A stretch of 64,000 nucleotides of DNA, from assembly GCA_051294905.1 (NCBI GenBank), contig CM119381.1, positions 8,804,001 to 8,868,000 of the forward strand. Reading direction: 5' to 3'. This document shows positions 3,801-64,000 of this stretch, piece after piece (the stretch's first letter is position 1; each line of letters begins with the position of its first letter). This DNA is from Botryllus schlosseri (Eukaryota). The translations under genes and the position numbers were made by a program. Under the pieces are notes generated by a model, which saw only the letters and a list, made by a program, of their open reading frames with translations, did not search any database and had not been told where the DNA came from.

Positions 3801-6800
3801 GAGACAAACATTGCTGACATGCAAGAAATGGAAACTCACCTCGCACGGCTCTCTGCTTCTTGAATTGCTCATAATCACTCTTCAATTTATCTGAATAAAA
3901 CCTTGATGTGAGATCCTTTTGCAAACATCAAATATAATGGCACAATGAGAGTGACATGTTCACTTCATCACCTAGTCTATATCTGGTCAGAAGCTGAACG
4001 CTGTGACACTCTGCTATCTCATCAATAGTCTAGTAGTGGTGGTTGCATTGCTACTTCTACTTGTAATTGAGTCGATTTACCGCATTACTTCTACTTGAGT
4101 ATCATTGCTGACAACTTCGACCTCCACTGATGATGTAATTATGAGTCGTAATTGAATATTTGATTTGACTCTGCTTGGGTCACAGAGACGATAACGCATG
4201 CACGGTCTCTTACTCATGACGGTTCTCGTCTTGTTGACTTTCAACCCCAAAGATTTCGCTTCCGAATATCGTTGCTTCAATCGTTCCTTCTGATCAACGA
4301 TCGCTTGCTTATGAGCGTAGTTTTCCTTGAAAATTTCAAAAGCTTCCTGCCTCCCGGCAGACATCTCGGGATCTGAACGATAGAAGCGGAAATGAGTCAG
4401 GGTGCGAATCAAAATTTCAAAGTATTTCCATCAGTCTCGACTTTGGATTGGACTTTACATCGCTGTTCGACAGAAATATTGGACAGCGGCACTAGCTCAG
4501 TAACTTGCATCTCTAGTCTTGCAATGAAGAGGTCTCAGGTTAGATGCCTAATGGCTGTCACCCCTAGAAGCCAGCCGTGACAAGAAAATCCAACCCCTGC
4601 CATAGCCCGGGGTAAATGGTTAAGCTTGCGGCATCAAGGGTTTTTGGCGTTAAACTTCAGCCAAATCATTAAGCCGACAACTGAGCACTCATCGGCTACA
4701 GGTTGAGGGACTCTCTCCGTCTCTTTGTAGAGTATCGGTTCTCAAACTTTTAAAAGTATTCTGCCTGGTGGACTATTTGTAATTCCAACGCCCTACAAAC
4801 ATCAAAGAATTCCTATAGGATAAATACAAAAACCACACCCATGACAGAAATGGCGAAAACTGTCAAATTCTGTAAGCGTTTGACAGGTTGCGTACTCTAA
4901 GCACAAACACATGTTTTTCTGCAAGTAAGTTATATACTCTTGTTCGGGATAGCGCAACTGTCATGTAGCGGGGTACCGTCATTCGGTCTCAGTAGGTTGA
5001 TATCGAGTGAATTCTGATTACGAATCATCTCAAACTGTTGTACGAACCCCAGTTGGTATGTTGATCCCGGTTTGCGAACGGGTGCACAAGAAAAATATTT
5101 TATTTTTGCTTCAACACTATCATCTTTTCCGTACCTTTCACACGGGACTTGAGCTCGAATTGCACGTTATCATCTTTCTTATGGGGGCTGGGTTCGTAAG
5201 CGGAACTATTGTACGGCATCGTGCCGCTAGAAAGATTGCCGTCGGATTGAGATCGATTCGAAGAGTCTGCGTTGGATTCCGCGTCCATCGCCCTTTTCCT
5301 TTCCTTCTTCAGCATGTTCACCAAGATGTCTAATTCGAACAGTTAAAGGACTACTTTCCCAGACGTTTCGTGAGCATCCACGTCCCAACTTCAATATCCA
5401 AAAATCATGAAAATAGATGCAGGAGAAATTTTGAGGCATAGATATACTGACAGCTCAACGCATTAGTACACAAAATTTTCCGATAAAAGAATCTGTTAGA
5501 CTGCTCCGATAGTCGGACAGAAAATTATTATCAATGTGATCTCATTATAGTCAGAGGTGGTCAGTAACGAAGTACTTCTACTTATATGGAGTACTCAAGC
5601 AGGCTTTGCCTACTTCTGAAAGTGATTACGTTTTAAGACTACTTTGATTAGATCCACGTTTAGGCAAAACTAAATACTTTTGTTACTAAGCTACTATGTA
5701 AAACAGAAAGTAGTTTGGGTATATGCTTGCGTCACTTTTATGAGTGACAGTGTCATGACAAATTGGGAAAAAGAGCCTCTGCATCATAGTACCTGAATAC
5801 ATATTTAAAAGTCGCGAGTGAGACACATCAAGAGCGACCTCACTAACGACTTGCCCTAGCACTCGCTAGCGAAGGAGCGGAGCAAAGAAAGAAACGAAGT
5901 CGCGGGCCAATTTCGATACCATGTGATCACCACATTAGCCATGACCGATCTTTTCGATCGGTAGGAACTTCCCTTCGAAAAGGATACTAATCTCCATATC
6001 TCGCTGCTCCAAAATCTCTTTTAATCTTTTGATTTCATGGGGCGTAAGGGAAGCCTCACTCTCGCTTGATTGCTGTGCTGGCCCATCCGAGCTTGCAGAA
6101 TCGTTGTGTCCGTTGCTTAGTTGTATCGACTTCAAGGCGTGCTTTTTTAATGCCCCGTAAGAATATTGGATTTTTCTCATATCGCCGCCAACGTCGAGGG
6201 TCGCCTCCAAGTCCGTGTCGTTCAGGTAGTTTTCTATCATTTCATTGAGGCTGAATGAAAAAGATTTTGTTACTAGTGTATTCATGTATATGTGTAATTG
6301 ACAGAGATGGTGAAAATAGTCAGCATTGCTACTTAAGCTGAAGTAGAAGTATTACCGGGAATTTCTGCTGAATTACAACTAAAAATATAAATATTGATTT
6401 CAAAAAATGTGTCAAAACTAGTTCAAGTCAAAGTAGATAGTAAGAAGTTTCAGCAGTACTCACTTAAGTAGTTTCAAAAGGTGAATTAATTTGGTTGATA
6501 GATCTCATATTGTTAGCACTTAATCGCAAGTAGCTACTTCAAAAATCGCAAGAAGCATCCCCTCCACTAACGCAAATGACTGAGGCAGTAGAAATATGTG
6601 CAATTTTTGAAACTATATTCAGTTACCGTGATACAGGGGCTATTTCGCTCAGTTTTCATAATGTCACTCTGAAAAGTGGTGCAAGCATATCCCAAAACCC
6701 CTTCCTACTTCAGAAAATCCAAAGTATGTAGTTTTGTTTTAAAAAGCGTCATGTAAGTCTCAAGGCATATCCACTTGAGTAAGTCTTACAAGTAGGCAAA

Positions 6801-47400: not shown

Positions 47401-50400
47401 CGCTAGCTTTAGGAAAGAGTCATCGATCGAATACGGAACCTCGTGTTGCGTAACAAACGGTTGTATTTGTGTGAAGATCGGATTGCATTGGGAAGGTCAA
47501 ATAAGGAACCAAAATCAATTGTGCGTAATCCCTAGTGCAATCCACCTGTGGGTTATCCCAATGACTGATTTCCCGCCTAATTAGTCAGAGAATGATAGTG
47601 ATTGGAAGCCACTCACCTTCGACAGTAGCAGATGCAATAAGCTTTTATAATGACATCGGTCATCAAACACGCATTCTGCATCATCATTTCGTTCTGGGCT
47701 CCGACTAGCGGGCAGTGCCAGTATATTGCGACAAACATTTGTCTATGGTCAGTGGTCACGCCGTATATCTGGGTGTATAATTAATAGCTGTAGTAGTTTT
47801 AACTGCTGTGACATAGCTCAACTACATGGTATGTGTACAAAACTCCGGTGCCTAAATGCTATAACCGTAGCTCTGCCACGTATATCATTCACCACAGCTG
47901 CTATTATACTTGTTAAATATAAGGAAAGTTGGTATAAAGTTTTATGTTCATCCAGGCCATTCACGAAGTATGTAATTCCAAAGCTGTGTTGTCACATGCT
48001 GAACTCGCAAATTGCTTTTGTTGTAAAATGAATGTACAATTGGACATTTGCACGATCTACATTTAGTCGTGCATTCGACGTATGTATACGAGATTCCAAT
48101 GAGCATATATTGCATGTATGTATTTTTTCACCAGTCGTAAATGAAACAGAAATGAGCATGAACAGTGAAACAGGATACATAAATTTTCAATTGTAGGTCA
48201 TATCGCGACCAGGACGGGAAATGCCGTACACGTCATCTCACTCCCGAAAATATTACCTATTGTTGTCGTGTACTGGACGGATTTGAAGTTGTATAACAAT
48301 TCATATAATAACATATCACTATAACATATCACTATATTTTTCTAACGAATGATACGGAATGAAGTTCGAAACATTTGCAATATATCCGAAACTAGTCCCC
48401 CCCCCCCCTTATCGTCATATCACAAAATCCAACCGGGATTCTAGCAACCCCAACAGATTGTTTGATGACATGGAATGTTATGACGGTTGATGAGAGAATC
48501 CAAAAATATGAAATTCGGTCTATATATAGAGACACACGTGTGAATGGACGGAGGTAAATCGCGCAAAGTGCGAATTTTTTTTCAAGTTGACCGCTTCTTC
48601 GCGCCCCCCCCTCCAGGTTGAGAACCAGTGCATTAGAATAACAATATCAGTTTCAGCGCGTTCCTGTAGTTTTGCTTCGACATTTGTACTGTCGTGTGCC
48701 GTGAAATGCGCTGGGTAACTATTAAATATGCAAGTTTCGAAATTATAGTCATTATAGTCATTAAAGCATCACGATTTCGGGTCCCAGAGATCAAGATTTG
48801 GGTCGCAGCAAAAAGGTGAAGAACCACTGCTGGATCTGTGATTGGTCCTGGCTATACCAGAACTATCAATATCAACTAATCGTATGCCTTGTTGTCTAGT
48901 TACATCGAATTCGTTTAGCTTGGTTGGTAGACCGGCAGATATTGGTAGACTTAATTGCATAGCCATACCCGGCTTTAGTAGCTATACTATGATATTCCTT
49001 ACCAATCGATATTGTAATCTATAGTTCTTTAACTAGAATTGCGGGATTGATTTTCATGCTTCAACGAAGCTTGATTTAGTTTTCCTATATAACGGGGATT
49101 TGTCAGTGCCTTGACATATATCGCCTGCAATAGTCACTCTTACCATATGCAGATAATGGATCAAAGATTGTTGACGTGATGAAGAACAACAATTGTGACT
49201 TTACAACTGCCATTGGCGATAGGCAATCTACAACGCCAAAACCAGCTACTGGGAGCTGTCGTGATGCTAATCAGTGCCGTGCGTTCAAAAGCGAATCAAA
49301 CGCGGTTGATATTCAAAGTATCGTCAATGATCTAGTAGATAAGACGGTTTGCAAGCTAAGTTTGGAGAAACCACCTCGGGTGGCGAGGTACCGAAAATCA
49401 CCGACTCTGGGAATATACAGCGACTTGTGCACCCGAAGGGAATCGGAACCCAGCGTAAGGTTATCGCAGACTGACAAATTGAGGCTACACCAAAGCGGTT
49501 GCAAGAAGCACGAAGCAATATCCGAGAATCCTGTCGAAGATGGGGGCTTGAAGAAATTTTACAAACTCGCGTCTTTGACGCTGGAAAAGAATTCAAGTTC
49601 GGAGCCGAAGATCGCCGACTTCGCTGCGCTTCTGCAAGCAAAAGGCATCTGGCTTTCTGACCCGAGACTCAAGGAGACTCTTCGTGTTATCAAAAAAGAG
49701 CCGAAGAAGGAGGAAACCGAGCTCACGGAAGACGTTTTTAAAAGGTGAACTAAATACATATTTGAAACAGAGATTGATATTCGTCCAAAAATATCTTTCA
49801 CGTTGTATGGAAAATCCGGTAAATACCAACAGATAATTTTGAAATATCTGAATACTGCTGTAGCTGCCGTTAATGTTTTATGACAAATATCAAATATCGA
49901 CGGCAAACTAAATACTTATTTGAAACAATCAGTTCACATACCGTATGGAAATGCGGTAGATACCCACAGACAATTTTGTAAAATATCTAAATGGTGCTGC
50001 ACCGCTAATGTTTTATGACAAAGATCATATGTAGACTTACCTACAGCAAAATAAAAAAAACTTGAGTATATACCGTATATATTTTTGTCCTTGATGTATG
50101 TTTTTGTGGCATACCCCGAGTCATCATACACATACTAGTGCGGAGCGGATCGACAAATTCTCTGGTCCGGCTCCGGTCGTATCAGGAAAAGTACTGATCC
50201 GGCTCCAATCCGACTCCGGCCAAAAATGAAAAAGTTCGACCCTACACGGTACGGGGGTTCCGTGAATTGATAAATATGCCTCGCTTATGTTCGCACTGGC
50301 TTGGCGTTTACTTGCGTGTGGTTGGTTGGTAGTTATTTAGTTATGAAATTCATGCTTATCCATAAAGATTCCGGCCGTAACAGAAAAAGTACTGATCCGG

Positions 50401-53400
50401 CTCCGATCCGGTCCGGCTAAAATTGTAAAATTCCGGCCGGATATCCAATCCGGCTCCGGTCCATGCTCCGCACTAATACATACATGTGATCTGTTTTCTG
50501 CGAGTCAGTTTGAACTAATAGCATTTAGAGCAGGGGCGGGCAACATACGGCGCGCGACGGGATTTTGTCTGGCCCACGGACACTCTCCCGTCCTACATGA
50601 TAATGTGGCCCACGTTTCCAGTGTTATGCTGTCAATAGAAACGATGCTCACCAAATTTGGTTCAATTGCAACCACTGGAAGTGGAGTTATTGCCGTCGAA
50701 AAATTTGGATTATGATTAAAATAGTATTCACGGTGACCGATTCTTTGTTTATTTAATATACTGGTGCTCACCGTAAATACTATTTTATTCAAATCAAAAT
50801 TTTTCGACGGCAATAACTCCGCTTCCACTGGTTGGAATTGAACCAAATTTGGTGAGGACCGTTTCTATAGACAGCCTAACACTTTCATGGGGTGAACAGA
50901 AAATTTTCAAATTTTTTATTATTTATTTATATATAATAAATAGAAACTTTATTCTCCTGTAGCAAAGCGGTTACTGGCTGGAATTGAACCAAATTTTGTG
51001 CGTAGGCTTAAATTAGGTAACCTAACAATTTTATCAAGTAGCCAGTACGATTTGAGAAAAAAAGTCAGTTTTGAAGAGCCCTAATGAGCATTCATGATAA
51101 TATCCTTATATCATGTCCAAAGTCTAATCCGGTTTCGTGAACCGTAGTACCATCCAAATTCAAGGTATATATTCAAATCTGGATTTCCAAGTTCAATGTA
51201 AGTCGATGCTAATGCATATCACCCTGTTAATATATTGCGAAAACATGAATGTACTTAATCCAACTGGAACGTGTTGTCTTTATTATACATATATGATTCG
51301 CCTTCTATTGTAGGATTTGCACGCCTGCAAGTCAATTGGTTCGGCGCTTGCTGTTGAGTCAACTGACTATACCCGGATTTCAAGTGTTCCGAAAAGGAAT
51401 GGCGAAGATTTACCAAAGCATTGTCACAGAGCTGACGGCAATGGTATTGTGATTACACTAATTAGCTTAGTCCTACAGCCTGTATAGGCCAGGTATACGC
51501 AGTTGGTATGACTGAAAATTTCAATATGCGCCATGAATTGCTGTTTAGCAACGCACAGTTTTTGACATTGTGTTTTGGTGGTAAGGAGAGCGCATCTCTT
51601 GTCGCGTTTGAACTACAGGTCGACCGATTATCGACCAGGCCGATATGAGGAGCTTTTCCGATATCGCGACTGATATTTTATATATTAAAAAATTCAAAAA
51701 TATTGGAAATTCAATGCTTCGTGTTCTCAATCTCAAGAAATCGACGACGCAAAAGGCGATACGTGACAAATTTACCCTTGCAGGGCGAGTTTAACTGGGT
51801 GAGCAACTGAGCATGCAGAGAAAATATGATTCCTGCAGTACAATCTACCTCTACAGGCCTGACCTACAATTCTGTATCACGTTTTTCTTTTTGGGTTATC
51901 CCAAATTTCAATGAATGCGCACAATTAAGCAATAATTCTTTTTAATTTCAGTTTTCTTGTTTGTTGTTCAAATTTCTGTTGCATGTACAAGTGCCATCTT
52001 GACTAATACATAATATTTTTGCCGAAATGGTTCCCTGCTCCTTCCATATTAATATCGGCCTATGATATCAGTTATCGGCCTTGTGAGTGTGCCGATAATA
52101 GGTATCGGTCTGCAATAATCTGTCGACCTCTAATTCGAACTGGAGACGTTCCGTACAACCGCAAGAGCGAAGATCTATGTCCCCGTTCCGTGGTATGTGG
52201 CAACAACACCAGCGACGTCTTCAAAGCCGCTGTTGCCTGTTGGAGGTCTTTCTTTTGGCACGCCAACCCCAAGGGCGCCCAGATTAAATCGATGGTTGCA
52301 AACTTTGACCCACAAAAATATAGGCTCCATATTTGAACTTTTAAGGTCATAATTATCATTATTGTTACTACGTCATAATAGAGGGCTCTCGAATGCACGA
52401 CTCGACTCGAAGTTTAGTAGGCCTATAGACTCGGAATCGACTCACAGACGAATTACTCGATTTCTCCCAACCAATCGAAAGTTGACTTCGTTATCTGAGG
52501 TTGAGCTGAAACGGCAACTCTCGTCTAAGATGGATATTGAGACGACATCGCGACCAATTTTCGAAAGTTCCGTGAACCACTTACGGCAGGGGCGGCCATC
52601 CTATAGCCCGCGAGAAGATTTTGAGTGGCCCGCGAGATAATTCTCGAAGTTAGTATTAATATCACATAATAAATTTCTCCGGCACTTTACTTTGAACTTC
52701 CAAGACCAACCAAAATTTGATCAGCCTGATTTCGAAATTTGGGATGTTGATGACTTAAATACCAGTTCCAACGCGTTCGCGCAGCCAGGGGCCAGCAACC
52801 TTTCTCGTAGATCTCCCTATATGACCACAAAGTAGATTTGTCGTTGTAGATTTATTTGACTTGATATTTTTCTTAGCACTTCGCGCGATATTGTCACTCA
52901 ATTTCTTGAATTTAGTACCACTTCCAGAGTGGCCCGCGCTATGGTTCGCAAATCTCATATGGCCCTTTGGCCGAAAAGGTTGGCCGCTCCTGACCTACGG
53001 GTTAAGAACAAGTTGGTTGAACAGTGTGCTATTCGAGTAGTATTGGATTTCGGTATCAACTTTGCTATAAAATCTGTGCAACACCAACAGCGGGGTTTGG
53101 TACAGAATCCACTATATCAATCAGCCAAATAGTATTTTTTTCATCTGTCAAACGAAAAGGAACCTACAATCAAGCACTCCGGCTATGATTCGTCGTCTAA
53201 TTACATCGACTTTATGCAAAGCAGAAGATCGGACAAGTCGAAATCTGTTAGCATGTCAGTATGCACTGTCGATGGTCAACGCTTGTCTTACGGAGATCAA
53301 GGTAAGAAGATTAAGTTTGTAAAGTGACGAAATCGCATGTGCATAAGCCTCGTGTTTACGATACATAGCTACCCTCCATTCCCTTGATTCGTGTGCCGCC

Positions 53401-56400
53401 GTGTTGAACTACTGCATAGCATGTCGCAAAAATGGGATTCAAGCCATGAAATCGCGGATCGGAAAGTCGGCTCTTTTGCGAAATGAGGTAACACAGACAT
53501 ATGTTTAGGCCTGTGTCTGATTAAAAGACCACTTCAAGTCGTTTCGGCACCCTCCTATACGACAATTGTTTGCTTGCCGTGCAATAGGGGAACATTGCGA
53601 CATTTATACGTCAGTCAGTTAACAATGCGAGTTGAGAAATGAGTTGGTCCGTTATGACTTATCTTGTTAATGCTGAACAACCTTCCAGAGCAAGGGGCAA
53701 ATTTATGTACCCAATATATATATATAGCCTATATATATTTATGTATTATCAAAATGAGTTCCAGTTTTAGTATCAGTTCAAGTATTCGGTTGTTAGTTTG
53801 ATAACTCGAATATTTGAAAACAAAATTTCCATGAGAAATATACGTATCGCTGGTGAATGTGAAAAATGTTACAATTGTTGGCCTGTACTACGGGTCAGCC
53901 AGACTCAGCATCATACGGAAAGCCGCGGTTGTGGTTACATTGATAGCATTCTCTTTCGTTCAAGGATGAATTTACATTTGACGAAGACGACAAGGTTTTG
54001 AACCCTTTTACCAAAGCCGGGTCGATCCTGACTTGCGCAACACTTTTGCATAAAGAACTCACGGAGATGCAGGTCGACGAAGTGCACGAAATATATTCGC
54101 AAGCCATCGCAAACGAACCGCTGTGCTGCGATAATCTGAGGTAATACGAGTATATGACCTACTGAAATTTATCTATGGGTTACATAACGTAACGTAACGT
54201 AACCCTACAAGCTGCCCACCACACCAAGGAGATTAAATTCTTCATTCTCCGTATACATGGACATGATCAGAACGCCCCACCCTGGCCTTATAAACGTCTC
54301 TTGAGCTGCATAGGTAGGAAAACTTGGAGGCGCTTAAGCAGATCGCGATTTACGAGTCACGTTCTCCTAACCCATACCTGGTCAAGTCTACTTCAACATT
54401 TATATACTCTAACTTTGCAACAAAACATCTATCATATTATATTCATTTTTCAATGTAATTGCATTCATAACAAAACAAACTATAAAAATTATCAAGGATC
54501 TAAATGACAGAAACTGATTCTATACTCAAAATCTCCTGAATAGTATACGCTGAATTTACTCCAATAGTTGGAGTGGGGCTAGAACTTTATTGCAGGGTCA
54601 GGTAGTTTATTCATTGATGAACAATAATATTTCGATAAAAATTATTACAAAACCTACAACTTATGACACGGAAATGCAGAAGTCACAAAGCACTCCATGA
54701 CGTTGAGTGCATTTTTCGCGAAAAAAAGTGTTCTAGGATCAGAAAGAATTCAGACCAGACATGAAGGTACTCATGCTCCTGGCACCAACCAAAGTAGATG
54801 CGATTCCATTAAATTGAAATTTGTCTAGCTTTATGCACATGAAGGTAAATCAGATTGAAGAATGCATCGGGGAGCAAAATCATTATCTAATTTCAAGTAT
54901 CCTTCGTACGTAACTAATGTTATTTGTATGAATTCAGTAATCGGTATCAACCCAAAGAACTTGGGGCAGTCTTATTTCCGTGTAATATGGATCTCACTGC
55001 ACCAGAAAGCACATTACAATAAAAAAAAAACATACAGTCCGCACAGTAAAGGGGTGGCAAGTGGCTTTTATCACAGCCAACTTGAAATTTCTTTTGTTCA
55101 TTGTCAAATTGGCATGGAAAGGAAGCTTCGTCTTGGTGCATCGTGAGTATTTCCATGACACTTTTTTACCAACACCATTCTGGTTTTAAGCAACGGATAT
55201 CATGACAGGTTCAGGCATAGTTCAGTGTGAAAATTTTCAATTGCTTGTCAGAATCATTTTCATGGCAGTGCATGACAGACAATATGCTATTTTCGATAAT
55301 AATCTTTTATCTCCTGTAGTAGATTCATTAAAACAATCAATATCCTGGTAAAGTATTTAAAGACATGGATCACATTTCAACTGCAGAACTTGTGGTCATC
55401 TGCTGCATCACCTTAGTTACAAATTTAATCTTGGTAGTTTCGTTGTATACAACTTCAATACAATTTTAGCATTGAGCATATGCTGTCGGATAAAGATACC
55501 AACCTAAAGGGTTCGTGTTCAGTTATCAGTGAAGCATGCGGTAGGGAATCGGTTATCCAAAAGGTATCCGGAACATGCTCATTCATGGGGTTTCTTGTAA
55601 ATCGCTTCCACGAGCCCTTTGGGAAAACCGCATGAGTTACAAATACGCTGACCCTGGAAGCGCCAGCCGATTTCATGCAAGCGATGCATCTTTGTACAGT
55701 TCCGCCGGTGTTGATCAAGTCGTCAACGATTATCACATGTTGGTTTTTCGGATTCCCATCCACTATTGTGACCTCACGTTCACTTCCTTTACGTCGTTTT
55801 ATACAGCGGATCACAGGGAAATCCTTGAAATAATAACTGAACCTTTTATAAGCGCCTTCGTCTGGGAATGCTATGGCAATTGGGATATCGTCTTCAAATT
55901 GGTTGATAACTTCAATGAACTTTGGCATCGCCGATGCAAGTTTAGGAACGATATTATCGCTGAAATAGAATCTTTCCTGAAGAGCGTGGATGTCATATGT
56001 CATCAAACGAGCTGGTCCCATAGAAGAGAGTGGTATCGCTGATAGCAACCTTGCCATAGCAACAGCTGTAGCCACTTGACCTTCGGTGTCGACTCTTTCC
56101 ATTGTCCCAGTGTTGTAATAAGGAAGTACAAAAGTCAGTGATTTGATTGAAGATTTAGGTAATGTATATAAAACGGAAATCTGCTCAAATATAATAGCAG
56201 GAGAGTAAAAGCTTCCGACGAAGATCACGTGCTTGTCACTGAAGTCCTCGATGTTTTCGATGAAAATGTTGGGATAGCCATCCTCGAATGCATTCCACTT
56301 TACGGCGTCCATTCTAACATCCACCCTCACCTTGCTATTAGATTGAGAACATCTGGCTGCGATTTCTTTTTCGATCCTCGCGACCAACGTCTTCATATCC

Positions 56401-59400
56401 CGGTGGCAAATGAGGATGGTGTTTTGGCCTGACATAGCGAGCTTCACCCACCAGCTTTTACATTGATACCAGTTTCTGGTTCTGGTTGTGATGTTTACAT
56501 TTCTCTGCTGCTCGGTGTTCCGCTTTAGCTGATAAGTCAGCAAAATCACTCAACCGTGACTGGAAATTTTGCGGTTGAGTAGTTCGAATTTTATTGAGAA
56601 ACTCACTTAGAGTTCGGGTCACTGAGTGGGTTCGGGTTTCGATTCATTATCGAATGTTAACATGGAATGGCAGCGACCGATTTTGCAGCCTCGTTTCGCT
56701 TCGCTGAGGCTGGAGTCAGAATTATTTCGCGGCAGTGACTGGCAATCGAAAAGTTATCTTCCAGAGCCAGGAATTTACGGAATCTGGTCTTGATAACTTC
56801 TGGATTGCCTGAAATCCTACAGTCGCTGCCGCAAAATTATTCTGAACTCAGCCTTAGCGAAGCGGAACGAAGCTGCAAAATCGGTCGTTGCCATTCCATG
56901 TTTACATTCGACATATTCACAATGTAGATTGCAATCGGGTCAAGTTATTATGCCATGAATGCAGAAGAAACAATACAACAGAGAATAAAATGTCGAAATT
57001 TGCCGCGACGATTGCCTAGCTCATTACAAACTGCACAATATTTATTAGTTATCGACTATGAGAATTGCTCCTGTCCTGGCTGGGTGGCTCGGCTCTGAAG
57101 ACTTTGTCATATCGAGCCTAACGTCTACCTTGCATGTCGCATTTCAATGTTACATTTTTGCAATGTTATGTTGATATGTTATGTATACGAATAAAGATGC
57201 TCTCTCTCTCTCTCTCTCTCAATAGTGCATGCGTTGGCGAACACAGTTGTGTCTCATAATACAAAAGTAAAATCTAATTCTTATCATGATATGTGAAAAT
57301 TCACGGTTCTTCGATATTGTAAGGACATATGTCCATTATCCGAGTTAGGGAGCAAGATTTGTATTGAGTGGCGCAGTATCGTAGAATCTTTGGTAGAATC
57401 TTTGGTTAGAATCTTCTCAGCGTATAACTTTTTTGCTTCAATATTGCTGCCAACCTACCAAGCTGGAAAAGTGGTTATGAATATCGTAGGCCCCGTTACC
57501 CCGGCTACAGACAAATCAGTTTATCTTCCTTCCTCCGACCTATACCCCCGTCATTATTTTTATCAGAACTTATGCATCCGTAGTTTTAGCGGTAGCCGGA
57601 TCATTTTACGATGAGTCGAATAAGACGACGGACGTATTGCGAAATTCTGTTTGTATTACGATAGCTGTTACGGCACGCACCGCTAAGATTTTCTCGGGCT
57701 GGAACGAGCCACCCGACCGACAAAAACCGATCGTTCCTGTAGCTCATCAGGAAACAGTGGCGCCGGACCCACACAATGTACCGATATGGGTCCGTCAATT
57801 TGGACTGGACAGCGCCGGGGACCGTCCTGGTCGCGTCAAGCACTAGCATAGATAGCGCCGCTCCGAGCTTCATCGTTTCGTTCACTCCGCCCGTTCCATC
57901 GAAGTCGGTTATATATAGTTATTTGCGCCCTTTCTAGCCCTACATTTCGATTGATGTTGTCGAATCTCAACATAAATATGGAACGATGGAATTTGATTTG
58001 TGTGATCTCTGTACGGACGATTTGTTGGTTTGAGTTTGCTAATACGATCAGTGAGCCCTGTTCAATCAAAGACTAACGTATATCCCACCGTGACCATATA
58101 CTGCCCGAGAGAGAATGTCCGAATAAACGTTCTGCCCAAAACGTTTGTCCCAAATGTATTGTATTCATTTCAGCTACAATCTCAAGAGATTGTACGCCCA
58201 CGAAGAAATATCTCTAGCGTATTTCTTGAGTGCAAGATTGAAACTGCCGAGGATGTGCGTTCCTGGGGATCTATTGGAATTCCATTTTCAATCTTCGTCC
58301 ACGGCCGTTACTTGTGACTCGGCATCTATCGCAGCGGCAACTATTGCAAATGGCGGACAATGTCCTCTGACAGGTGACAAGTCAACAATCGACCAATAGG
58401 CTTACCACGCTATCTTTGCCAAGATAAGTAAGTCAATATGTCTGCAAATATGAATATTGGCTACGTCATAAATGCATCCAAGAAAACGTATTTTCGATAT
58501 GGCATGACTAGAACTGACGAGTTAGCACAATCAATCATACTTGTATTCACAGCCGCACCTCAAACCTAACTAATTGAGGAAAGGGTAAGTGCGAAAGGGC
58601 ACAAAAATTAGTAATTTCGGTAATTTTCTCAAATTTCAAATGGTTTCTTTCGCAATATTACCGCGTCCCTCTTTATGTGGCAAGTGATCGTTTCGATTAT
58701 CTAGTGCAGTTGTTCTCAGACTTAATTAGACACCCCCATTTATGAAAATGAACAATTTCGCGCCCCCTTATCGTGACTACACTAATTATAAATTAGCGCG
58801 AAAAATTCGGTTGACCGCAGCTTCGCGCCTACGTTCAGATGCTTTTACGCCCCTAAGGGGGGGGGGACTGATCTAGTTAATAGTAGTGACTAAGCGACGT
58901 GTTTCATTGTTTGTGGTTACGTCAAATGATTTGTTCATTGCTAAAACTGAAAATAACGATGCTGATACGAAAACAGCGCCTTGTATCCCCCAACAAGTTC
59001 GTTTGACCACCATATAAATTGAGTACCAAACTTTTGGGTATTGCGGGTGACATCCATACGTGCTTCGTTGCTGCGTCGCTCGAGTCCGACAGAATGCCAG
59101 CAGGGCCTAACAGCTCCTTGCCAGCACACATAGTTCGGTGTGTTCATTCCGAAGTGGAAGATTCCTACGAGAGAAGAAGTTCGCTTCATAACATAAACAG
59201 CTATTGAAAATGAGTCGTGGGGTGAAACTTAATACAAAAAGTCGATATTGAATCACTTCCCCGTAACAAAAACATCTCCTTTCCAGATGAAACAGTTTTC
59301 AAGGAAGAAATTATTCAGCACACTCTGAAGCGTATGCGATGTAGCTTGTCGAAATATACCGACTGTAAGGAGGTATAGTTACTAGTTAAATAGGCCTACC

Positions 59401-60075
59401 TATTGTTTTATTTATGATTCATCGCATATTTCTGTTGACTGTTGATTTTCAATAGATGGAAGATATCTGTTGTACAACGAGTGAAAGCGGCACTGTATTT
59501 CTTGTCATACCCGGCGTTCTGGGACTCGTCTTTTTCCTGCATTCATATCCGAGACCAACAGTTTCGAAAGTGGTGGACTCTTTGATTCATGTGAGTGAAT
59601 TGATTGGGACTTTGAGAGCATAGATAGTCGTTACCGAAGTACTTCTCAAGTACGCTTACTCGAGTAGGTTAACCAACTTGCTGTACTCAAGTTCCATCCT
59701 TTAGGATATTTCCACTTCTGTTTGAACAGGTCCTACATCCACAGCACTCCAATTTGGACTTTGAGAATGTTGTAAAGTAGAAAGTAGTTTATGATAGGCT
59801 CGCATGGATTTCTGAGAACTACAACTACTTTTGTTCACGGAGCATGCCGCATCTGATGTTTGAAGTTCGTCGCGGCTCTTCGAAAATATAGTGATTACGG
59901 GACGACAAATTCCACACTATTACCACACAGCGCATAGACTCGAAATCAGATTGGCAGTGCCTGTGCCTGAATGCAGAAACATGTTGAATTTTTATCACAG
60001 AATTTAGGAGCTGAGTTCAATTTCTCGCTGTACCGAAATTTGAAGAGCCGAGAAGACAGATGCTGCAAACGATGA
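44450..60075 (+). CDS. Divergent glutaminase-like protein (GLS fold, degenerate active site, long N-terminal extension, no ankyrin tail), about 760 aa
   Basis: Exons: 44450-44986, 47051-47156, 49153-49744, 51314-51443, 53175 (or 53160)-53301, 53369-53487, 53965-54140, 58174-58373, 59287-59372, 59456-59590, 60001-60075. All are GT-AG and phase-consistent. GLS-like segments: KGIWLSDPRLKE, LTIPGF, SVCTVDGQR, DEDDKVLNPFTKAG, VTCDSASIAAATIANGGQCPLT, VFLVIPGVLG, FNFSLYRNL. The first two exons and the start codon are less certain than the GLS-homologous exons. Confidence 0.8.
44911..45074 (+). repeat. 82-bp tandem duplication spanning an exon end and splice donor
   Basis: 44911-44992 and 44993-45074 differ by one base. 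Each contains ATGCAG|GTGCGT. Confidence 0.95.
45292..45683. mobile_element. hAT-like MITE (TCGAGTACTCGA family)
   Basis: TIR TAGGGCTGGGCA...TGCCCAGCCCTA with a perfect TSD cttgtagg. Confidence 0.9.
45715..46789. mobile_element. Longer non-autonomous hAT-like element (TAGGGTTGCCAT, GTCCGGAA repeats)
   Basis: TIR TAGGGTTGCCAT...ATGGTAACCCTA with gttgtat duplicated on the flanks. Collinear with 63372-64000. Confidence 0.85.
50136..50475. mobile_element. hAT-like MITE (CCGGCTCCGG family)
   Basis: TIR TAGTGCGGAGC...GCTCCGCACTA; TSD acacatac/atacatac. Confidence 0.85.
50635..50868. repeat. Inverted repeat with arms of about 77 bp
   Basis: 50635-50711 pairs with 50792-50868 (accaaatttggttcaatt...ggagttattgccgtcgaaaaa). 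Confidence 0.85.
51614..52132. mobile_element. hAT-like MITE (CCGATA/ATCGG family)
   Basis: Ends TACAGGTCGAC...GTCGACCTCTA; flanks gtttgaac/attcgaac (6/8). Confidence 0.65.
52587..52992. mobile_element. hAT-Charlie-like MITE (GGCCCGCG family)
   Basis: TIR CAGGGGCGGCCA...TGGCCGCTCCTG; TSD acttacgg/acctacgg. Confidence 0.85.
55455..56435 (-). CDS. Class II (plant PRS3/PRS4-type) ribose-phosphate pyrophosphokinase, intronless, 326 aa
   Basis: First ATG at 56435 (the ORF track starts at an upstream GTG). PRTase PRPP-binding motif VIIVDDLINTGGT. Class II signatures: FEDGYPNIFI, SPAIIFEQISV, TGTMERVDTEGQVATA, YDIHALQERFYF, AFPDEGAYKRF, VTHAVFPKGSW, FWITDS. These closely match Arabidopsis PRS4 as recalled. 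Confidence 0.92.
   Translation of the reverse strand: MSGQNTILICHRDMKTLVARIEKEIAARCSQSNSKVRVDVRMDAVKWNAFEDGYPNIFIENIEDFSDKHVIFVGSFYSPAIIFEQISVLYTLPKSSIKSLTFVLPYYNTGTMERVDTEGQVATAVAMARLLSAIPLSSMGPARLMTYDIHALQERFYFSDNIVPKLASAMPKFIEVINQFEDDIPIAIAFPDEGAYKRFSYYFKDFPVIRCIKRRKGSEREVTIVDGNPKNQHVIIVDDLINTGGTVQRCIACMKSAGASRVSVFVTHAVFPKGSWKRFTRNPMNEHVPDTFWITDSLPHASLITEHEPFRLVSLSDSICSMLKLY
56650..56911. repeat. 262-bp fold-back palindrome immediately upstream of the PRPS gene
   Basis: The left arm tcgaatgttaacatggaatggcagcgaccgattttgcagc... pairs with the right arm ...gctgcaaaatcggtcgttgccattccatgtttacattcga over more than 100 bp. Confidence 0.9.
57070..57220 (+). mobile_element. Retroelement 3' tail with AATAAA and (TC)n
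   Basis: ...atacgaataaagatgc(tc)n has the same tail architecture as 28023-28050 on the minus strand. The 5' boundary is approximate. Confidence 0.45.
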
Positions 60076-61216
60076 AGTCGACGATGAAATCTTCTCATAG
60101 AATGGCGCAATACCACTATTAAGGTCGCAAAAATACCTTTGTGGTTGTGTTTCGTAAATATTTCTGGACTATTTGTGCAACAAATATATTTTCATTGCTA
60201 AAAAACCTCTGAGGAGCAGCCGAAACAAAGGATATATGTAGTAAATATTATTACACGAGAGCAGAGGTATATATACATAACACTCAAGCCATACATTTAG
60301 AGAGTATTATAATTATTTATTTGGGATAGGTATGTATAGATGAGATAGGATAATGTATAGTATATTGAACCATTGTAACTATTCAGCAAATAATGCGGTT
60401 GGAACGGAGGAGTACTTTAGAAACTATAAAAGGGTGTCGAGTTCGCTTTGCGAACGACGGAAATTTGGAGGTTTGCGTTCGTAACCGAACCATTCAAGGT
60501 TCGCAGTGTAGTGGGAAATCTCGGCAGACCAGGGCCGCAGGCCACATCATCATGTAAAACGGAAAACTCTCCGCGGGCCAGACAAAATCCCTTCGCGGGC
60601 CGTATGTTGCCCACCCCTGCGTTATGTGCAAGCGGTTGTCAAGTTGGAAATGTTTACAGCAATAGGCGATATTTCATTGGTTGATTCTATTATGTGTAGT
60701 AACACATTAAAATATCGCGATAGTATTTACTGAAATTCTATTTGACAAACGGAAAACTGGATCGCGAATAGAGTTGTAAGTTTCAAGGATTGTTTCAAAG
60801 TATAATCTTGAAATGTGACTTGATCAAAGTTGGTAGTCATGTTTGTCAAACCTATTTCAATTCATACTATGCCAAAGTCAAAATATTTCATTTCGGTTTA
60901 TCTAAATTTATCTATAGTAGTACATCTCGCGAATGGATTCCGACGCCCAAAAATATCTGACTCGTTATGTCTGATGCATTATCCTGTCAGCGACCGTAGG
61001 GTTTTACAATTATTTCACACCTTTTTGAATAAGCGTTAACTTCGCAAAAGATTAGGGTTGGATCAGAAATAAAGTGAGAATTTGTCGGTATTCGAATCAC
61101 CGTCTGCAACGGTTCTGTTATTCGTTACTTATTTAATCTTACCAGTGAAACCTCAGATAATCGAATTCCTGAAGCCGGATGAATTTTCCGTGACTGGGAA
61201 ACAGCTACAGAGTAAA

Positions 61217-62396
61217 ACCAAATATGGTCCAGACATCATTTCAGGACTGGTCCGCTAGGTATCGAGAATGAAGTACTGCGAGCCATATGCATAGTCTTTG
61301 GTGACATTTTTAGAACATTTACGGTGATAATATGAATGCAACTAAATATGGTCCCAACATCATTGCGGCACTGGTCCGCTAAATATTGGGAATGAAATAC
61401 TGCGAAGCATATGCATAGTCTTTGGTGACTTTAATACAAAATTTTCGGTGATTGTGTTATTGAAACCAAATATGGTCCCGACATCATTTCGGCAGTGGTC
61501 CGCTAAATATCGGAAATGAAGTACTGCGAGCCATATGCATAGTCTTTGGTGATATTTTAGAACATTTACGGTGATAATATGAATGCAACCAAATATGGTC
61601 CCAACATCATTTCGGGACTGGTCCGCTAAATATCGGGAATGAAGTACTGCGAGCTATATGCATAGTCTTTGGTGACATTTTAGAACTTTAACGGTGATAA
61701 TATGAATGCAACCAAATATGGTCCCGACATCATTTCGGGACTGGTCCGCTAAATATCGGGAATGAAGTACTGCGAACCATATGCATAGTCTTTGGTGACC
61801 TTTTTAGAACATTTAAGGTGATAATATATGAATGCAACCAAATATGGTCCCGACATCATTTCGGCAGTGGTCCACTAAATATTTGGAATAAAGTACTGCG
61901 AAACATATGCATAGTCTTTGATGACTTTTATACAAAATTTACGTTGATTATGTTTTTGAGACCAAATATGGTCCCGACATCATTTCGGCAGTGGTCCACT
62001 AAATATTTAGAATGAAGTACTGCGAAACATATGCATAGTCTTTGGTGACCTTAATACAAAATTTACGGTGAATCTGTTATTGAAACCAAATATGGTCCCG
62101 ACATCATTTCGGCACTGGTCCGCTAAATATCGGGAATGAAGTACTGCGAGCCATAGGCATAGACTTTGGTGACCTTTTTAGAACATTTAAGGTGATCATA
62201 TTAATGCAACCAACTATGGTCCCGACATCATTTCGGCAGTGGTCCACTAAATATTTGGAATAAAGTACTGCGAAACACATGCATAGTCTTTGGTGACCTT
62301 AATACAAAATTTTCGGTGATTGTGTTATTGAAACCAAATATGGTCCCGACATCATTTCGGCACTGGTCCGCTAAACATCGGGAATGAAGTACTGCG
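61217..62396. repeat. Tandem array (minisatellite) of about 124-bp units, 9.5 copies
   Basis: Units start at 61217, 61341, 61465, 61588, 61711, 61837, 61961, 62085, 62209 and 62333. The core is accaaatatggtcccgacatcatttcggcagtggtccgctaaatat...gtactgcga...atatgcatagtctttggtga. Confidence 0.97.
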
Positions 62397-62692
62397 TGAT
62401 GAAAAACTCAGAATCTACTCCGTTCTACCTGCGGCTTGAGATTCTTATCCAAACACCAGTCCAACACACAGCAGAGTATTTTACAGCGTACCTGTTCAAA
62501 ACAGCGAGCGACGTCTCGAAACTTTCTTAAAAACTTGTGCCACGAGGTAAGCACACTGGCCAGATATTCTACGCGGCATTATGACGACACAACACAATCA
62601 ACATTCCCAAACACTTCTAACACTAGTATAGCAAGCATTATGTACAACAGTCTAACGATGTCTCAAGCATCACAAAATTATCATTTTTAACA
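62397..62692 (-). mobile_element. 3' LTR of a Ty1/copia retrotransposon (296 bp)
   Basis: TG...CA ends with short inverted termini (TGTTAAAAA / TTTTTCATCA). A purine tract GAAAAGGAG immediately precedes it on the minus strand (62693-62701), about 30 nt after the pol stop. Confidence 0.75.
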
Positions 62693-63371: not shown

Positions 63372-64000
63372 TAGGGTTGCCATACGTCCGGAATTTCCCG
63401 GACATGTCCGGAATTTCACCGAAAAATCTGCGTCCGGGAGGAATTTCTAAAATGTGCCTAAATGTCCGGAATTTTGAAGGCTTGAAGCAGACTCCAAAGT
63501 TTTTCGTAAATCAACATAAACAATGTTATTTTCAAGCAGATTTATGCTATTCAAAATTGTTCTTCGCGCCGCGCACGAGTTAATGCAATGTATAATGATA
63601 TTAGTATGGGCTCCAGGCACCACCCTCGCCAAAAATGCAATCAAAATAAATATAAATAACCATTATTTACTGAAATAAGTCTGATTGTAATCGCAATTAT
63701 AAGCTAACGGTATATTCCTAGAGTTGGTTAAAACGATTGGATGCTTCAATCACAGACAGTGGTTCCAAATCTAGGGCTCGTTCACCTTTATCTGGAGATC
63801 GCGATGATGTTGGACGTAATCACCTTCCTATAGGCCGTGAGTAAGTTTGGGCAAGCTAAATGTTTTCAGTAATCAGCTTTACAAGTTTTGAGCTTTGCCA
63901 CGGAACATTTTCAAGTGGGAAACGAGGTCGCGAGCATAAAAGGTTGGAAATCACTGGATGTGCAACCTGCTGGCACTGGCGTAGCAGCATGTGCTGCCGC
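63372..64000. mobile_element. Left part of a non-autonomous hAT-like element homologous to 45715-46789
   Basis: Starts TAGGGTTGCCATACGTCCGGAATTT and is collinear with 45715 onward. It runs off the window. Confidence 0.85.

Follow-up and report, generated by a model that had tools for sequence, protein, structure and literature searches.

A glutaminase-like gene of Botryllus schlosseri and its relatives: a conserved family that has probably exchanged catalysis for another function

Does a glutaminase-like gene that has lost most of its catalytic residues encode a decaying copy, a functional non-enzyme or an enzyme with a new specificity? This question is raised by a stretch of 64,000 nucleotides from Botryllus schlosseri (GenBank assembly GCA_051294905.1, contig CM119381.1, positions 8,804,001 to 8,868,000 of the forward strand; this whole stretch is referred to below as the window), in which such a gene, a homolog of the animal glutaminase GLS, occupies positions 49179-60075 of the plus strand. 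A preliminary description of the locus had proposed a glutaminase-fold protein that is either a conserved, catalytically dead paralog or the bearer of a pocket re-specified for another ligand, and the expression, orthologs, constraint and site pattern presented here fit this proposal. As judged from its residues, the GLS paralog very probably no longer hydrolyses glutamine, and we consider it likely to be a conserved, expressed protein with a selected function that is not catalytic.

In the known enzymes, Ser286 is the nucleophile, the N atoms of Ser286 and Val484 form the oxyanion hole, the alpha-carboxylate of the ligand is bound by Asn335 and Tyr414 and its alpha-amino group by Gln285 and Glu381 (as in the DON complex), and activity is lost in the Y249A, S286A, K289A and Y466A mutants (PMC4929687). 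Ser286 is deprotonated by Lys289, phosphate is held by Lys320 and Arg387, Phe318 and Tyr249 act as a lock, and the filament interface is made of Phe373, Asn375, Phe378, Gln379, Asp412 and Gln416 (PMC10912226). The human numbering is used throughout; it was checked by aligning the Ciona ortholog with chain 3ss3 (offset +119) and by the motifs of Latimeria GLS. In the alignment of the Ciona ortholog with the mouse and human GAC chains, a fixed offset placed Tyr249, Ser286, Lys289, Asn335 and Glu381 as expected.

The window protein keeps Ser286 and an equivalent of Tyr249, but the catalytic Ser-x-x-Lys dyad reads S-C-A-A, the lysine being replaced by alanine. Besides Lys289>Ala, the alignment confirmed the proposed substitutions Gln285>Asp, Asn335>Lys, Glu381>Lys, Asn388>Glu and Tyr414>His, and it also revealed Asp386>His and Arg387>Glu. 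Tyr466, which had been described as lost or shifted, has no equivalent in the window protein, and this position is not conserved in the family. The proposed Val484>Glu change holds in the MAFFT alignment, where the call hinges on gap placement. Of the lock, Phe318 is missing, and the activation loop has turned acidic. Lys320>Glu, listed earlier among the peculiarities of the protein, is indeed present, but it is not distinctive, as Glu is the majority state at this position in our set of canonical GLS-type glutaminases (14 of 26), and Lys was found in five, mainly vertebrate, sequences. The homology to GLS stands as well, although the alignment is not free of gaps and contains a few short indels, e.g., three additional residues after Tyr249. 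The contrast drawn in the preliminary description, i.e., structural motifs (TVDGQR and AATIANGG.CP) kept and catalytic ones lost, was borne out. Neither an exon that would restore Q-S-x-x-K nor a second GLS gene was found in a search of the whole window.

With the general base Lys289 and the proton shuttle Tyr466 gone, the protein would not be expected to hydrolyse glutamine, and with the phosphate ligand Arg387 turned into an anion and the Phe318 lock removed, GLS-like activation by phosphate should be lost, too. At position 381, where Glu accepts the alpha-ammonium group of the substrate in GLS, there is now a cation, and the pocket is predicted to contain two cations (335 and 381), two or three anions (387, 388 and 484) and histidines. 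Such a remodelled pocket may either be self-closed through salt bridges or bind a different, probably more anionic, small molecule, and the protein would then act through binding or assembly in place of catalysis.

The fold was assessed by AlphaFold modelling of the Ciona intestinalis ortholog, which is 42% identical to the window protein and serves as its proxy. The model, computed from 35 aligned family and canonical sequences, is confident, with a pLDDT of 83 and a pTM of 0.84. Its top Foldseek matches were human GAC; at 26% identity, the TM scores were 0.74-0.78 when normalized to the query and 0.84-0.88 when normalized to the target. The model indicates, for the proxy, that the glutaminase fold is retained.

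Relatives were gathered from genomic contigs and with exon 6, which was compared with 1.84 billion representatives in a full scan; an annotated protein of the window gene itself did not turn up in word-indexed searches. The scan gave four close matches, far ahead of ordinary glutaminases, and their names assign them to Phallusia mammillata and Ciona savignyi. The Ciona intestinalis and Clavelina lepadiformis proteins came from further searches. The family comprises Phallusia mammillata CAB3249517.1 ("putative glutaminase 2"), Ciona intestinalis XP_002123081.3, Ciona savignyi H2ZR61, a Clavelina lepadiformis protein (added later and standing outside the tree), two Logan contigs and a more distant, largely intron-free lineage represented by eukaryotic contigs from Tara and other marine metagenomes (the Tara lineage, at a guess a pelagic tunicate). 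Over exons 5-8, identity to the window protein is 68% for one of the Logan contigs, L001. The other, L002, carries a nearly complete gene, 43-44% identical and open throughout, with the same intron phases and one intron lost. The Ciona, Phallusia and Clavelina entries show 42-45% identity over about 400-420 residues, and the orthologs carry a precomputed PF04960 assignment. The family profile gave 743 bits for members and at most 202 bits for the best canonical glutaminase. The tree unites the family in a single clade (support 100/100). Its stem, at 3.2 changes per site, is very long and adjoins bacterial sequences; this placement was discounted, since such a stem makes long-branch attraction likely.

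As regards gene structure within the family, the intron between exons 6 and 7 is gone from L002 (fused exon at 4824-5112 of this contig), all introns of which are much shorter than those of the window, and a single exon encodes almost all of the catalytic domain in the Tara lineage. This parallel exon fusion suggests that intron loss tracks sequence divergence within the family. It is also worth mentioning that many metagenome and Logan proteins of 900-1300 aa (P0005, P0006, P0008 and others) matched the exon 6 query in two separate stretches and appear to carry two glutaminase domains.

For the comparison of individual sites, seven family sequences (Clavelina included) were set against the 26 canonical ones. 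The catalytic positions drift. Position 289 reads A/H/S/T/T/Y/Q, with Lys in none; position 286 reads S/S/S/A/A/E/A; position 466 is variable and Tyr is absent from every member. The window, L002 and Phallusia still have Ser286; both Ciona species and Clavelina have Ala in its place and the Tara lineage has Glu, i.e., the serine is absent from four of the seven lineages in which its state is known. Of the substrate contacts, position 285 is D or N, and at position 414 four sequences have H, two have Y and one has S. Other pocket or regulatory positions have become newly fixed. Every sequence has K or R at positions 335 and 381, 386 is H, 388 is E and 421 is A in 7/7, and both 387 and 484 are E in 6/7. 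The filament-interface stretch 372-379 reads CCDNLSYN in 7/7, including the very divergent Tara lineage, and the interface residues Asn375, Asp/Glu412 and Gln416 are retained in the family. The same pocket substitutions were found in both Ciona species, Phallusia, Clavelina, L001, L002 and the Tara lineage, which answers the earlier proposal to look for orthologs sharing them. This site pattern points to catalytic loss followed by selection on a re-specified site, and not to decay.

Constraint was examined by comparing the window with the L001 DNA. The only alignable parts are the exons of the glutaminase-like gene and a nested phosphoribosyl pyrophosphate (PRPP) synthetase gene, at 70-73% identity; the introns are not alignable. 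For exons 5-8 of the glutaminase-like gene (198 codons) amino acid identity is 0.68 and the nonsynonymous distance (dN) is 0.23, compared with 0.76 and 0.157 for the PRPP synthetase (325 codons), so the glutaminase-like gene evolves about 1.5 times faster than a neighboring bona fide enzyme gene. The synonymous distance (dS) is saturated in both. The maximum-likelihood dN/dS of about 0.03 obtained for the glutaminase-like gene is unreliable owing to this saturation, and as the NG86, LWL85 and YN00 methods fail at saturated synonymous sites, constraint was judged from dN and from the alignability of exons only. By these measures the gene appears to evolve far slower than neutral sequence. It shows the features by which a pseudoenzyme is recognized, i.e., homology to an enzyme, the lack of essential catalytic residues and purifying selection.

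These results bear directly on the simplest alternative, that the locus is an ordinary pseudogene or a recent, decaying duplicate whose frame has stayed open by chance. The loss of catalytic residues would fit it, as would exons 4 and 5, too diverged to match GLS alone, and the low depth in two bulk RNA runs. It conflicts, however, with an intact reading frame of 537 codons in nine correct exons, with spliced RNA, with the invariance of family-specific motifs and with conservation confined to exons at a dN of 0.23 and saturated dS. Intact frames occur in eight lineages, the others (at least seven) being only 33-68% identical to the window protein, and for this reason we regard a pseudogene as excluded for practical purposes, its probability being very slight. 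The argument of the preliminary description against random decay agrees with the exon-only conservation, the newly fixed residues and the intact orthologs.

The gene structure itself is as follows (Table 1). All eight introns have GT-AG borders, and the nine exons splice into 1614 nt with a stop-free frame encoding a product of 537 residues. Six exons were first spotted by three-frame reading, with AG/GT borders and compatible phases; these exons, their frames and splice sites, assigned originally to the interval 53175-59590, proved real, but the gene is larger and includes three more exons. Exons 2 and 9 were located by tblastn with the Phallusia and Ciona orthologs. Exon 1, whose start is predicted, has two extra bases at its end before a GT donor and is collinear with the same orthologs; its open reading frame (ORF) matches the Pfam family EF-hand_14 (PF17959; E 1e-5, 26.2 bits at a cut-off of 23.7). 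An in-frame alternative acceptor of exon 3 is possible at 53160. Exon 5 matches Pfam Glutaminase with an E of 0.0015 and ends within the invariant motif, after CCDNL and before SYN. Exon 6 by itself aligns with human GLS 388-443 (E about 1e-9) and Pfam Glutaminase (E 5.6e-6), and is 82% identical to its L001 ortholog. Exons 4 and 5 searched singly against the PDB gave only chance matches and no GLS, being too short and too diverged. The spliced protein scored 213 bits (E 3e-61, Z=1e6) against a profile of the 26 canonical glutaminases, to which it is 25-29% identical over approximately 400 residues, the profile alignment beginning at residue 137. Exon 7, spliced as proposed, gives a length equal to that of the Phallusia ortholog. 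The stop codon lies 19 codons past the FNF motif, and complete orthologs end likewise (the C. intestinalis entry ends differently). No ankyrin-like ORF was found downstream of the gene up to position 64000. The gene encodes the animal GLS architecture (EF-hand_14 and glutaminase domain) minus the ankyrin repeats.

Transcription was examined by mapping RNA contigs and reads of the same organism to 53175-59174. RNA assemblies contained 0.29-0.32 of the sampled words of 53175-54140, a region that is 0.44 exonic and for which about 0.34 is expected after the loss of junction-spanning words. A 1551-nt contig of run X2 joins exons 3, 4, 5 and 6 with GT..AG joints, exactly at the predicted sites, and extends further by 544 nt on the upstream side and by 381 nt on the downstream side. 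In run X1, a contig that covers exon 6 departs from the genomic sequence with a loose end at 58377, the bases of which are the first ones of exon 7.

Table 1. Exons of the glutaminase-like gene and neighboring elements of the window.
Feature	Position	Strand	Content	Support
Exon 1	49179-49744	+	First in-frame ATG, low-complexity N-terminus, start of the GLS-type EF-hand-like domain	
Exon 2	51314-51443	+	Remainder of the N-terminal helical domain, LLLSQLTIPGF motif	tblastn; AG/GT borders
Exon 3	53175-53301	+	Tyr249 equivalent, TVDGQR motif	RNA joins 53301 to 53369
Exon 4	53369-53487	+	Former S-x-x-K site, now D-S-C-A-A	RNA joints 53301 to 53369 and 53487 to 53965
Exon 5	53965-54140	+	Activation-loop equivalent, Asn335>Lys (FTKAGS)	RNA joint 54140 to 58174
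Exon 6	58174-58373	+	Glu381>Lys, Asp386>His, Arg387>Glu, Asn388>Glu, Tyr414>His; AATIANGGQCP motif	
Exon 7	59287-59372	+	Region of the former Tyr466, not conserved in the family	Start backed by RNA loose end
Exon 8	59456-59590	+	Former oxyanion-hole strand (Val484>Glu), conserved IPGVLGL strand	GTGAGT donor
Exon 9	60001-60075	+	C-terminal FNFSLYRNLK motif, stop codon	tblastn; gapless fit to the C-termini of orthologs
PRPP-synthetase-like gene, intronless	55455-56435	-	Pribosyltran_N and Pribosyltran domains; antisense in intron 54141-58173	1962-nt RNA contig over 54533-56478; raw reads
Inverted repeat, 92 nt	56650-56741 and 56820-56911		Arms 88% complementary, 78-nt spacer; same intron as the PRPP-synthetase-like gene	RNA contigs
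Inverted copies of an element of about 90-100 nt	50521-50610 and 60540-60629; 50620-50720 and 50783-50883		83-88% complementary; intron 1 and downstream of the gene	
Tandem array	61216-62507		At least 10 copies of a 124-nt unit; identity to the reference copy 62-91%	
ORF of 182 aa	62725-63273	-	Resembles the C-terminal RNase H region of a copia-type retrotransposon polyprotein	Translation, by eye

A more serious competitor of a non-catalytic function is an enzyme that still works with rewired chemistry or on a new substrate. Two routes to it may be envisaged: Ser286 could be activated by a relocated Lys335 or Lys381 in the lineages that keep the serine (window, L002, Phallusia), or the cluster of Cys372-Cys373, His386 and Glu388 could form a new catalytic set acting on an anionic or non-amino-acid substrate. 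C372, C373, H386 and E388 are present in 7/7, positions 335 and 381 are always basic, i.e., they are conserved in the way usual for catalytic residues, and the fold is intact according to the Ciona model. On the other hand, Ser286 is Ala or Glu in both Ciona species, Clavelina and the Tara lineage, which means that a Ser-based mechanism is not family-wide; Tyr466 is lost in all members; the closeness of Cys373 and His386 in space would have to be assumed; and our literature searches yielded no precedent for such chemistry in the glutaminase fold. We consider this explanation rather unlikely. An overlapping proposal, which we hold only tentatively and to which we give a similarly low probability, is that Lys/Arg335, Lys/Arg381, His386, Glu388 and Cys372-Cys373 together constitute a new site for the binding or conversion of some compound that is not glutamine, candidates being dicarboxylates and acylated amino acids. 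If true, this re-tooled module would sense a metabolite in a manner specific to tunicates, or catalyse a reaction new to the glutaminase fold.

A dead subunit might also join the dimers, tetramers or filaments of mitochondrial GLS and tune their activity. GLS enzymes act as tetramers and filaments (PMC10912226), a canonical GLS persists in tunicates beside the family (Styela clava P0173), and the interface residues named above are kept, all of which would suit such a role. However, the N-termini tell against it: of the first 35 residues, 3-5 are acidic in family members, compared with 0-2 in the canonical enzymes of tunicates (Styela) and vertebrates (a charge count only, made from predicted start codons). 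Moreover, the phosphate-binding Arg387 is Glu, the Phe318 lock is lost, the activation loop is acidic, and the filament stretch has given way to a motif that is invariant and peculiar to the family, which suits self-association more than assembly with GLS. We find a regulatory partner of GLS improbable. The invariant CCDNLSYN may instead be a conserved protein-protein contact, homotypic contact being likelier than contact with GLS. Since the N-termini are acidic early, unlike the basic N-termini of canonical GLS, a site outside mitochondria is plausible.

Several points weigh against a conserved, expressed paralog with a non-catalytic function and should be kept in mind. The loss of catalysis is read from residues alone, the fold model is that of the Ciona ortholog rather than of the window protein and informs on the overall fold only, and the saturated dS leaves no reliable numeric dN/dS. 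A relocated general base is conceivable where Ser286 is kept (window, L002, Phallusia), and the new pocket lysines 335 and 381 may provide it; furthermore, conserved new pocket residues suit an enzymatic function as well as ligand binding. The location outside mitochondria is a guess from N-terminal charge. As regards expression, the RNA support stops short of the 5' end and of the junction to exon 9, and the exons are nearly readless in two bulk raw RNA-seq runs, from which we presume that expression is probably restricted by stage or tissue. With these points weighed, we still regard a conserved GLS paralog with a selected, non-catalytic function as the probable explanation.

Compared with the vertebrate KGA and GAC forms of GLS and with GLS2 (PF04960 with PF17959), the window family shares the EF-hand-like N-terminal domain, the glutaminase fold and the motifs TVDGQR, NP..(N/K)AG, AAT(L/I)ANGG.CP and FNF.Y..L. 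Unlike vertebrate GLS, the family lacks Lys289 and Tyr466, has Gln285, Asn335, Glu381, Asn388 and Tyr414 replaced, carries Glu in place of the phosphate ligand Arg387 and CCDNLSYN in place of the filament stretch, has lost the Phe318 lock, and by charge count has no presequence-like N-terminus. Ankyrin repeats are missing as in the GAC splice form, but in the window family they are missing at the gene level. The Styela protein P0173 ("glutaminase kidney isoform, mitochondrial-like") belongs to the same domain family and comes from the same phylum-level background as the window gene, yet it differs by the QSCMK dyad, Asn335, Glu381, Asn388, Tyr414, Tyr466 and a basic N-terminus, and is only 25% identical to the window protein; it shows that a canonical GLS with all canonical contacts is present in a tunicate. 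In contrast, the ascidian entries named "putative glutaminase 2" or "glutaminase" share the invariant motifs of the window protein and, where complete, its C-terminus. The differences between them and the window protein are that the Ciona and Clavelina entries have lost Ser286, which the window protein keeps, and that the Phallusia and Clavelina proteins are extended at the N-terminus by 500-700 residues of low complexity.

Pseudoenzymes that descend from metabolic enzymes are known, e.g., plant PDX1.2 (PMC6829848) and viral pseudo-glutamine-amidotransferases (PMC7605207). They exemplify the same concept, in which catalytic residues are gone and binding or regulation is left, but their folds and families are unrelated to GLS.

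The origin of the family was traced through intron positions because its placement in the tree is likely an effect of long-branch attraction. A fish GLS gene (Onychostoma, L007/P0198), which stood in for the canonical GLS locus of Styela in this comparison, was rebuilt into 19 exons, the translation of which equals the protein exactly. Projection of introns on the alignment revealed that five of the eight window introns share both column and phase with the fish gene, namely those after exons 1, 2 and 5 (the last one is 4033 nt long) and the two flanking exon 8, of which the upstream one coincides within one alignment column. These shared positions and phases indicate that the family arose via duplication of an intron-bearing animal GLS gene. 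A retrocopy and a bacterial transfer were also considered as sources and were ruled out by the introns common with fish GLS. As a separate observation, several bacterial "glutaminase A" proteins (P0099, P0137, P0201 and P0208) have the full animal-type architecture of EF-hand_14, glutaminase domain and ankyrin repeats, and stand near the animal enzymes in the tree.

GLS enzymes are heavily studied drug targets. Full-text literature searches brought up neither a natural, conserved protein of the GLS fold that lacks the catalytic dyad nor a tunicate GLS paralog. The orthologs are already present in databases, but only under automatic enzyme names that imply activity. By descent and fold the window family belongs to the glutaminases, while as judged from its residues it fails the catalytic definition, and its conserved features define a distinct subfamily. 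The "glutaminase" label means that tunicate metabolic reconstructions count a probable non-enzyme. The family also constitutes a natural experiment on which parts of the fold, oligomer interfaces and pocket can persist or be recharged once catalysis goes. Tunicates are the sister group of vertebrates, and knock-out, reporter and localization work is routine in Ciona, which makes the Ciona copy of the gene a tractable system.

Several neighboring elements of the window are listed in Table 1. The nested PRPP-synthetase-like gene is transcribed, the RNA contig over it being contiguous, and the L001 contig carries the same antisense gene in the same intron. At the 92-nt inverted repeat the word depth of RNA contigs is about 470-1430, compared with 15-37 for genes, and there are many loose ends, which suggests a multi-copy hairpin element resembling a miniature inverted-repeat transposable element, or a source of small RNA. 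The inverted copies in intron 1 and downstream of the gene probably represent a short interspersed repeat. The tandem array, located just downstream of the glutaminase-like gene, reads as a repeated open frame (NQIWSRHHFG.GPLNIGNEVLR...).

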